DNA of 62,948 bases, counting the filler, from Ministeria vibrans ATCC 50519 (Eukaryota; Protista; Filasterea), in assembly GCA_943704425.1 (NCBI GenBank). It is 11 parts of 11 records of this genome, joined end to end, with 100 filler letters (N's around TTAATTAATTAA, not from the genome) between each part and the next. Parts side by side here need not be neighbours in the genome. Positions count along the whole stretch, not along the records: positions 34,918 to 36,558 come from CALSCP010001237.1; 10 more parts are not named here. One strand, written 5' to 3'. How positions within the stretch are numbered: position 1 is the first letter of the stretch; each line of letters begins with the position of its first letter. Below are positions 34,918 to 37,036 of the stretch, one piece after another. The notes under the pieces were generated by a model. It was given only the letters and a program-made list of their open reading frames with translations, had not been told where the DNA came from and made no database searches. The position numbers and the translations under genes are program-made.

Positions 34918-35026
34918 TGCTCGAGTCCTGAAAAGTCGTTGAAGGGTGTAGAGTTGGCAGTCCTCGAGCGCTTTGGGCATGCGTCGCCATCGGTGTCATC
35001 GTGAGCAGCTGTTGTTGTTGTGCAGT
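34918..35026 (-). mobile_element. hAT transposase fragment, near-identical to 27854-27962
   Basis: 109-bp direct match with one visible mismatch. Confidence 0.9.
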
Positions 35027-35255
35027 ATCAGTACAAACCAGTACATTTGTTCTGGTCTGATTGGCTCGATGACTGATCTGGTCTGGTGACTCAGACACTC
35101 TGGTCAATATCTGGTCTGGTTTTGTACTAGTCTGATTGTGTACTGATCTGTTCTGGTCTGATCGTTCAAACCCTAAAAGAAACTTCAGAAAGTCAGCATT
35201 TTAATTTTTCATTTTACCTTTAGCTTTTAGCTGACCCATTAGTTTCAACAACTCC

Positions 35256-36557
35256 ATGAGTACCATACATGAACGTATAGAAGAGGCGCGCTCGTCCAAT
35301 TGCTTGAATTTGCGGACTATGCAACTCTCTTCTCTCCCCACACAAATCCTTGAACTCTCTCGCACTCTCAAGGAGCTGTATCTATCAGACAACCCACTTA
35401 GAGAGCTGCCCGATTGGATAAACCGATTTGAGAAGCTGGCAGTATGCTTTTCGGAAGTTTCTCGTTTCTGAACGAATTTCAACGATTTTTCCGTAGCTTC
35501 TTGACGTGACTAATTGCAATCTGACATCGTTTCCTGTTACGATCCTAAGCATGAGGACACATCTGGAATTCATAACGTTTCACGGAAACAAGGGCTTCAA
35601 ACCTTGTCCCGACGACAACCTTTGCAGCAGTACGAAAACCAACACTCTCTCACTGTCTAAGTCTCTCTGTTTCTGAATCCGTGTCTTTCTGCCAATATCT
35701 CCGTCGTCTCTCTCTCTCTCTCTTTATCTCTGTCTCTTCCTGTCTCCCTGCGTGTCTGTGTCTCTTTCATCATTTTGGTTGATTTTCACCGCCCTTCGTT
35801 CTCTCTGTCTCACTCTATCTGAATCTCGGTGTCTCTCAGTGTGTACCTCTATCACCACTCGTTCATTTGTTTTTTTGTTTCTATCACTGTGCTCCTTTTC
35901 ACCCTTGTGTTTCGATTTGTTTTGCGGTGTCTCTCTCACACACTCTTCTATTAATTATTTATACTGGGTCGCTCTTATTACCGAACGTGCAATCTTTTGT
36001 TTGTAGAAGGTACATTATAATTAATGTTTGACTTCGAGAAAAGTTGAGAAACATCTCACTGACTTTTGTGTTTTCCTAAATGTCCTCGAATAAAATCTAA
36101 ACAGTCTGTAAGATACCCAAATATGATTGAGATCTTCTCACTTTATTTTCGTATAGTTTGTAAGTGGAAAGAAGCGAATAATAAGAATATTGTGATGGAT
36201 TGTTTTGTGCTTGTGCTTTTGGATTGTTCTATTTATTTTATAAATGGGTTGTATTCTTCTTCTATTTATTTTAGGGTGTAAGTTAGAAGAACGAGAAAAA
36301 AAGGGTTTTAGTTCTGATATTGTTTTTCTTTGTGCTTTTGGATTGGTCTGTGTATTTCAGATCGTAAGTTGAAAGAACGAGAGAAAAAGGGTTTTGGTTC
36401 TGATATTGTTTTTCTTTGTGCTTTTGGATTGGTCTGTGTATTTCAGATCGTAAGTTGAAAGAACGAGAGAAAAAGGGTTTTGGTTCTGATATTGTTTTGT
36501 GTTTGTGCTTTTGGACCGTTCTGTTTATTTTAGTTGGTAAGTTGAAAGAACGAGAGA
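35256..36557 (+). CDS. LRR protein, 3' part missing; two normal exons followed by seven putative 3-nt microexons
   Basis: Exon 35256-35441 (LNLRTMQLSSLPTQIL...LKELYLSDNPLRELPDWINRFEKLA) and exon ~35498-35629 (LLDVTNCNLTSFPVTIL...PCPDDNLCS); then AG|NNN|GT units at 36007, 36105, 36157, 36275, 36361, 36447 and 36534. Confidence 0.8.
36278..36557 (+). repeat. ~86-bp tandem repeat, 3+ copies, with a degenerate copy from 36160
   Basis: GTAAGTTGAAAGAACGAGAGAAAAAGGGTTTTGGTTCTGATATTG...TATTTCAG-NNN units start at 36278, 36364, 36450 and 36537. Confidence 0.92.
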
Positions 36558-37036
36558 ANNNNNNNNNNNNNNNNNNNNNNNNNNNNNNNNNNNNNNNNNN
36601 NNTTAATTAATTAANNNNNNNNNNNNNNNNNNNNNNNNNNNNNNNNNNNNNNNNNNNNAATGACCAAAATAAATGGTATTGAAAGAAAGATAAAGAGAGA
36701 GAGAGAGGAGAAAGAAACAAAGTGATAGAGAGAGAGAGGAGAAAGAAACAAAGTGATAGAGAGAGAGAGGAGAAAGAAACAAAGTGATAGAGAGAGAGGA
36801 GAAAGAAACAAAGTGATAGAGAGAGAGAGGAGAAAGAAACAAAGTGATAGAGAGAGAAACAAAGTGATAGAGAGGAAGGAGGGAGAAAGAAACAAAGTGA
36901 TAGAGAGAGAGAGAGAAAGAAGGGAGAAAGAAACGAAGTGATAGAGAGAGAGAGAGAAAGGAGGGAGAAAGAAACAAAGTGATAGAGAGAGAAAGGAACA
37001 AAGTGATAAACAATAATACAGTGTTCCGCCGTTACC

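Follow-up and report, generated by a model that had tools for sequence, protein, structure and literature searches.

Can exons of three nucleotides each be strung together by the splicing machinery, and how would a run of them arise? These questions are raised by one locus of Ministeria vibrans ATCC 50519, the start of a gene for a leucine-rich repeat (LRR) protein on the + strand of the piece 34918-36558 (CALSCP010001237.1). The piece is part of the window, the whole 62,948-nt stretch of DNA that was analysed and along which all coordinates are counted. A sequence-only reading had noticed that the pattern YAG-NNN-GTA recurs seven times downstream of the second exon of this gene, and had taken the NNN triplets for microexons included in varying combinations. 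All seven units, five of them with a GTAAGT donor, were found where that reading had placed them (36007-36536), with intervening introns of exactly the lengths it gave (95, 49, 115, 83, 83 and 84 nt).

The use of the triplets as exons was established from public sequencing runs. A search of these runs returned DNA-like holders of the sequence together with several presumed-RNA runs, among them X7-X11, carrying two organism labels and coming from different studies, and four runs were aligned to the piece: X11 (organism A, study P4), X7 and X8 (organism B, study P3), and the DNA-like X1. We treated X11, X7 and X8 as RNA because each carried the joint of intron 1 and showed depth confined to exons. 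One contig in each of these three runs removed intron 1 exactly (35441 to 35497, GT..AG) and matched exon 2 up to position 35629, beyond which all three continued with AAGTCTTTTGGTATCATCTTGTTGGGGGGC, letters that the aligner left unplaced. Letters 1-21 of this continuation are the seven triplets in their genomic order (AAG, TCT, TTT, GGT, ATC, ATC, TTG), whereas the chance of 21 ordered bases matching is approximately 4^-21. The spliced contigs extended 92, 247 and 92 letters beyond exon 2 in X11, X7 and X8, respectively, and the first 30 of these letters were read. Unspliced contigs over intron 2 were also present in X7 and X8, at about one-tenth of the depth of the spliced contigs, and X1 gave a single unspliced contig over 35145-36269 with no joint.

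All seven triplets are thus flanked by an AG acceptor and a GT donor and occur in RNA from X11, X7 and X8 with the flanking introns removed, as spliceosomal microexons (≤30 nt) do, and the predicted concatenation of exon 2 and the triplets, the core of the sequence-only reading, was confirmed in three runs from two studies. We therefore consider it likely that this small LRR-protein gene of a marine eukaryote contains, in its 3′ part, at least seven successive 3-nt exons that are included constitutively.

The array reads as follows on the + strand. Microexon 1, AAG, occupies 36007-36009 (tag-AAG-gtacat; continuation letters 1-3) and is followed by the 95-nt intron 3 (36010-36104), which contains CTGAC 42 nt upstream of its acceptor. 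Microexon 2, TCT, at 36105-36107 (cag-TCT-gtaaga; letters 4-6) precedes the 49-nt intron 4 (36108-36156, GTAAGA...TAG), microexon 3, TTT, at 36157-36159 (tag-TTT-gtaagt; letters 7-9) the 115-nt intron 5 (36160-36274), and microexon 4, GGT, at 36275-36277 (tag-GGT-gtaagt; letters 10-12) the 83-nt intron 6 (36278-36360). Microexons 5 and 6, both ATC in the context cag-ATC-gtaagt, lie at 36361-36363 (letters 13-15) and 36447-36449 (letters 16-18) and are followed by intron 7 (36364-36446, 83 nt) and intron 8 (36450-36533, 84 nt). Microexon 7, TTG, at 36534-36536 (tag-TTG-gtaagt; letters 19-21) is followed by 22 bases of intron 9 (36537-36558), cut by the contig end.

The pattern is strongly over-represented. 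Over the whole source, the + strand contains eight matches to YAG-NNN-GTA, compared to 1.05 expected, and all matches fall on this strand. In the region that precedes the clear repeat (35630-36199), four matches were counted where 0.09 would be expected, and 2000 dinucleotide-preserving shuffles never produced as many. When the spacer between YAG and GTA was varied from 0 to 12 nt, the 3-nt spacer gave eight matches and every other length 0-2, with none at spacer 0. The eighth match, cag-TGT-gtacct at 35837-35845 within intron 2, was not among the units listed by the sequence-only reading and is unused in the mRNA. With its weak donor and its position outside any repeat context, this decoy forms a natural negative control for the functional seven.

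In phase 1, the gene reads ...PCPDDNLCS-KVFWYHLVGG, where the seven triplets supply K-V-F-W-Y-H-L ahead of V-G-G, and the frame of the RNA contigs agrees with the all-included reading after PCPDDNLCS proposed earlier. The claim that no ordered subset of the triplets creates a stop also held (0 of 128 subsets, encoding 72 distinct peptides). This property follows from composition, because AAG alone starts with a stop-completing dinucleotide (AA) and nothing ending in T can precede AAG.

The 86-bp tandem unit and the origin of the array

The introns after units 3 to 7 were recognised by alignment as copies of a single 86-bp tandem unit, which argues that the array grew mainly by tandem duplication. 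The repeat occupies 36160-36558 (+ strand) and comprises about 4.5 units, the first of them diverged, as delimited by Tandem Repeats Finder, by the repeat families D1-D3 and by alignment; Tandem Repeats Finder reported a period of 86, 3.3 copies and 93% matches over 36278-36558. The unit starts with GTAAGT and ends with ...TTTCAG plus three bases, and so consists of an 83-nt intron and a 3-nt exon, each copy showing the order GTAAGT, CTGAT, T-rich tract and YAG. Introns 6, 7 and 8 and the truncated intron 9 all belong to this family, in which the copies stand head to tail with complete splice signals, the arrangement expected from intron multiplication by tandem duplication. Between introns 6 and 7, 4 of 83 positions differ; between introns 7 and 8, 7 of 84 do. 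Their identity is mosaic, in that intron 6 is identical to intron 7 over its 3′ part and intron 7 to intron 8 over its 5′ part, and therefore fits unequal exchange within the array.

Intron 5 proved to be an older copy of the same unit, as shown by alignment and by repeat family D3. Its ancestral acceptor position reads TTTTAT (36235-36240), and the acceptor in use is provided by a 34-nt insert at 36239-36272, which accounts for its length of 115 nt. The sequence-only reading had regarded the first three introns as unrelated to the repeat and had seen in their conserved 3-nt spacing a sign of selection. This holds for the 95-nt and 49-nt introns and fails for the 115-nt intron, and the selection argument is weaker because only two introns are non-copies. 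A comparison of triplet with intron divergence involved numbers too small to support a selection argument on the triplets.

The insert at 36239-36272 matches very high-depth sequence in all runs (12574 in X1, compared to 132 for the locus; 754 in X8). The high-depth contigs that match it run into AT-rich sequence unlike the locus and show a TTC indel at 36253. The insert looks like a small fragment captured from some abundant sequence, which may be organellar or a repeat of high copy number.

The array would have grown from a self-sufficient short intron with three exon bases, amplified by tandem duplication or unequal exchange, every added copy putting three bases into the mRNA. Since an addition of three bases keeps the frame, it would be tolerated and would lengthen the tail at the C-terminus (K-V-F-W-Y-H-L-V-G-G...). 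Rather than a regulated diversifier, the array is most likely a side effect of repeat expansion that is tolerated or of slight use. A more far-reaching possibility, to which we give a minor weight, is that the 86-bp unit is a copy-number-variable repeat that remodels coding sequence three bases at a time. Strains or cells would then differ in the number or identity of units, or include units variably, giving the LRR protein a hypervariable aromatic tail, and the same expanding mini-intron may be present in other genes of this genome. If true, this would be a previously undescribed way in which an intron-bearing minisatellite generates new coding sequence and diverse proteins.

Three other explanations have to be set against a constitutive array grown by duplication. 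The sequence-only reading held that the triplets are cassette exons, joined in varying combinations to produce many variants of an aromatic-rich patch after the LRRs. Such a model is helped by microexons that are real, symmetric, in phase 1 and free of stops in every combination with 72 possible peptides, and by the two contigs that stop alike 92 letters past exon 2, where a branch of the assembly graph is possible; yet stop-free subsets are unremarkable given the composition of the triplets, the strong GTAAGT donors suit constitutive use, and most units are young repeat copies, two of them having an identical exon and a near-identical intron that add little diversity. Moreover, an identical full-inclusion sequence was recovered in all three assemblies, which come from two studies and carry two organism labels, with no contig that skipped a triplet, and a single invariant isoform is the very outcome that the reading had named in advance as telling against diversification and not against the microexons. 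Combinatorial diversification is thus provisionally unsupported, rather than refuted, because contigs drop rare variants, and we judge the cassette model distinctly unlikely.

We hold it to be very doubtful that the 83-nt intron is a mobile element of the introner type and owes its copies to repeated insertion here and at other places in the genome instead of to local tandem duplication. In X1, the summed depth over parts of the unit rises to 2987, compared to 132 over the single-copy part, and a loose end at 36374 derives from one contig with different upstream sequence; summed depth, however, is not copy number, and extra units of the same array explain it equally well. The unit ends show no terminal inverted repeats or target duplications, and the flanking triplets differ (GGT, ATC, TTG), while tandem duplication is in keeping with the regular head-to-tail 86-bp period and the mosaic identity. 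When metagenome contigs were scanned for exact copies of the core of the repeat unit, none matched, and no second locus was recovered. Least of all can the pattern be put down to chance or to a non-coding minisatellite in a 3′ untranslated region or intergenic sequence, with the protein ending at the stop codon 35674-35676 and nothing spliced. The exon 2 frame does run open to a stop at 35676, the RNA runs do contain low-depth unspliced contigs and most units are repeat copies, but spliced contigs with the exact seven triplets at about ten times the unspliced depth contradict this explanation, and its probability is close to zero.

Several points nevertheless weigh against the array of constitutive, coding microexons that we favour and against its origin by duplication. 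For the introns of 95 and 49 nt no likeness to the repeat is recognisable, so duplication leaves part of the array unexplained. The RNA status of the three runs is presumed from the joint and from the depth confined to exons, the run records being silent on it. The RNA evidence consists of assembled contigs and not of raw reads, in which isoform ratios, the order of splicing and the ends of transcripts are not visible, and two of the three contigs stop exactly 92 letters past exon 2, which makes a downstream branch possible, caused by an alternative form or by a repeat. Finally, the C-terminal tail KVFWYHLVGG is, as protein, a predicted translation, and its frame may meet a stop soon past the 30 read letters; part of the array would then be 3′ untranslated region.

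Splicing of the array and its extension past the contig end

The introns between the triplets (49-115 nt) are AT-rich and become U-rich toward the 3′ end, with CTGAC-, CTCAC- and CTGAT-like sequences as candidate branch sites. The donors next to microexons (GTAAGT five times, GTAAGA once) are stronger than those of intron 1 (GTATGC) and intron 2 (GTACGA). Under intron definition, each intron is recognised as a unit and the length of the exon is of small importance. Introns of 49-115 nt would be recognised in this manner, and exon length would then hardly matter. Because an acceptor and the following donor, 3 nt apart, could not both be occupied at once, the introns would have to be removed stepwise. 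The order of removal would probably be, at its simplest, 5′ to 3′ along with transcription, with each triplet already part of the lengthening upstream exon by the time the following donor comes into use.

We also considered a mechanism in which intron structure bridges the splice sites. It found no support, as folding of six introns revealed no structure beyond that of shuffled controls (z from +0.7 to -1.9). A scan against Rfam returned no credible RNA family, which makes the repeated introns unlike hosts of small nucleolar RNAs or other known RNAs.

The earlier expectation that further units lie past the contig end was borne out by the RNA continuation and by loose ends of contigs. After TTG, the mRNA goes on with TTGGGGGGC, from one or more exons located past the end. 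Low-depth unspliced contigs of X7 and X8 carry sequence like that of intron 8, followed by tag-TTGGGG-gtaagt or by tag-TTGGGGGGC-gtaagt, and other loose ends in the runs read tag-CTG-g... and tag-GGCCTG-gtaagt. The array therefore continues with additional small exons, 3 to 9 nt in length. Should TTGGGG and GGC be the next units, tag-TTGGGGGGC-gtaagt could be a partly spliced intermediate that has lost the inner intron and kept the outer ones; such an intermediate would bear on the order of splicing.

Upstream gene structure and relatives

The two-exon start of the gene was defined on the + strand of the piece by its open reading frame and splice sites. The coding part of exon 1 (35256-35441) begins with an ATG at 35256 and encodes 62 amino acids with LRR motifs, as supported by the open reading frame, record 15 of X7 and record 19 of X8. 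Intron 1 (35442-35496, 55 nt, GTATGC...TAG) is in phase 0, and its joint, seen in X11, X7 and X8, was absent from X1. Exon 2 (35497-35629, 133 nt) ends ...TGC AGC A in phase 1, exactly where the RNA contigs of X11, X7 and X8 leave the genome. The sequence-only reading had the end of this exon right and its start one base late, at 35498. Intron 2 (35630-36006, GTACGA...TAG) is C/T-rich and measures 377 nt, since the mRNA joins 35629 directly to the AAG at 36007. Downstream of exon 2, a C/T-rich stretch is followed by an AT-rich one, and intron 2 contains a (TC)n tract at 35698-35745 together with more C/T-rich low-complexity sequence.

Transcript contigs over exon 1 start at 35244 and 35246. 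The X8 contig carries 29 additional letters, CTCACTTGCCCCTCAAAACTGCCTTTGCG, upstream of 35244, where the junction offers no clean AG acceptor, an AG at 35241-35242 lying one base earlier; these letters could be a 5′ untranslated exon, a leader or an assembly artefact. The X7 contig simply begins at 35246 and lacks this extension. Further upstream, at 35040-35175, degenerate direct repeats of the CTGGTCTGAT type (period ~16, families D6 and D7) showed zero depth in the RNA-type runs. At its left end (34918-35026), the piece was covered deeply in the RNA-type runs (~185) and, in the DNA-like run, at several-fold single-copy depth, and the contigs of all four runs diverged from the window at 35026, where there is no GT/AG, and went on with CGATTGTCTCG.... 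This segment seems to have been duplicated from an expressed gene at another place, or else to mark an assembly junction. The search of public runs also found small shares of the stretch in one seawater metagenome and one algae metagenome.

Assignment of the gene to the LRR proteins, as made by the sequence-only reading, was upheld by sequence searches and fell slightly short by the Pfam model itself. Exon 1 scored 18.8 bits against LRR_1, just below the cutoff of 20.6 (E 0.0014), and gave 5023 matches at E ≤0.001 among representative proteins, the top ones being generic multi-LRR proteins; among the best matches, P0007 and P0008 were confirmed as LRR-Roc-COR proteins. LRR proteins are marked by LxxLxLxxN-type repeats that profile models recognise, and the homolog P0137 scored above the LRR_1 cutoff. 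A ROC-COR, kinase, TIR or death domain was not seen in the available sequence, which ends before the downstream part of the gene.

P0137, the one true relative recovered, was identified on a 685-nt metagenome contig (L001) from ENA and is 56% identical to the Ministeria protein over exon 1 and 53% over exon 2. Its introns lie at the same two positions, and its exon 2 ends at the same boundary, in the same phase 1, after ...NLCA. The third exon of P0137 likewise starts tag-AAG, but no GT donor follows, and a stop occurs after K-G-L. Because of this early stop in an exon that starts with the same triplet, the ancestral gene is suggested to have had a very short tail, to which the microexon array would be a lineage-specific extension; the comparison depends on one short contig. 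L001 is too short to reveal an array. In the region 540-640 of that contig, the intron of the homolog after exon 2 contains an (ATA)n microsatellite, ahead of the exon that starts with AAG.

Other relatives were scarce. The frame of exon 1 had no match in a collection of 5.8 billion proteins, where P0137 found only itself and one distant match at 31%, and exact look-ups of three frames of the window found none on record. Another metagenome contig, L002, detected by a protein-pattern scan of metagenome contigs at 33% identity, was rejected as an ortholog, as the match lay inside an uninterrupted frame of 647 amino acids, and was assigned to a prokaryote-like LRR protein. Neither L001 nor L002 contains the YAG-NNN-GTAAG pattern.

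Comparison with known systems

At least seven consecutive 3-nt exons push exon recognition to its limit, and the product is seemingly made cleanly. The locus thereby offers a natural test case for intron definition, for the steric constraints between adjacent spliceosomes and for the sequence in which introns are removed. The young, still recognisable copies show a route by which a tandem repeat can create introns and add one residue to a protein with each copy. Such genes escape annotation pipelines and read aligners entirely; here, the 21 bases came out of the alignment as nothing more than an unplaced "loose end".

Recursive splicing at the ratchet points of long Drosophila introns uses a zero-length exon that leaves nothing in the mRNA. 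The array resembles ratchet points in that a 3′ splice site stands directly beside a 5′ splice site, an arrangement implying that successive intron segments are removed in steps. It differs in its spacing of exactly 3 nt and in the three bases that stay in the mRNA; no match was found at spacer 0. The array also departs from a mutually exclusive cluster of the Dscam type, in which exactly one exon is chosen, as all of its units occur together in the mRNA.

Single 3-nt microexons are known from animals, plants and dinoflagellates, and have been described in Drosophila hth (micro-Ex8; PMC7392893), in human MAP4K5 (PMC8632122) and in Amphidinium carterae (PMC12584245), and RPS24 has microexons of 3, 18 and 22 bp (PMC12207440). 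The triplets of the M. vibrans gene are likewise exactly 3 nt long, have canonical splice sites, appear in mRNA and are invisible to standard gene predictors and aligners. The known examples, however, are isolated or occur as a few of mixed size, often between long introns and often alternative, whereas here at least seven follow one another at distances of 49-115 nt and are apparently constitutive.

The micro-exon genes (MEGs) of schistosomes combine exons of 3-81 bp with introns of up to 5 kb (PMC10526429) and vary their products through alternative splicing (PMC10399815). They share with this locus runs of symmetric exons in multiples of three, any subset of which keeps the frame. In schistosome MEGs the introns are long, most exons measure 6-36 nt, the proteins are secreted and isoform variation is documented, while the introns here are short (49-115 nt) and copy each other, all the microexons are 3 nt, no signal peptide is obvious and one isoform was seen. 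In the known part of the gene, ordinary exons account for 319 nt and the seven symmetric exons that come after them for 21 nt, and differential inclusion did not appear, the three assemblies holding only the full-inclusion form, although contigs hide rare forms. Plants, too, have clusters of microexons, 1-15 bp in size, with two adjacent microexons verified by RNA-seq (PMC8831610, PMC11096116). These are similar in having adjacent, tiny, constitutive exons with short introns that annotation misses; however, they are ancient and conserved, lie inside conserved domains, number two or three per cluster and stem from gradual intron gain, not from a tandem repeat.

A literature search on arrays of 3-nt exons, tandem introns and introner-derived microexons yielded only single or few microexons, with no run of seven. 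For the duplication itself, the closest precedent is intron gain by tandem genomic duplication, as in the potato RdRp gene (PMC4974935), which also adds spliceable introns to a coding region without breaking the frame. In the classical model, an exon segment with AGGT is duplicated and gives rise to one new intron; here, the repeat unit is a whole intron with three exon bases, amplified several times, and each round adds a new 3-nt exon. Thus, the locus combines two known kinds, microexons and intron multiplication by tandem duplication, in a new variant form.

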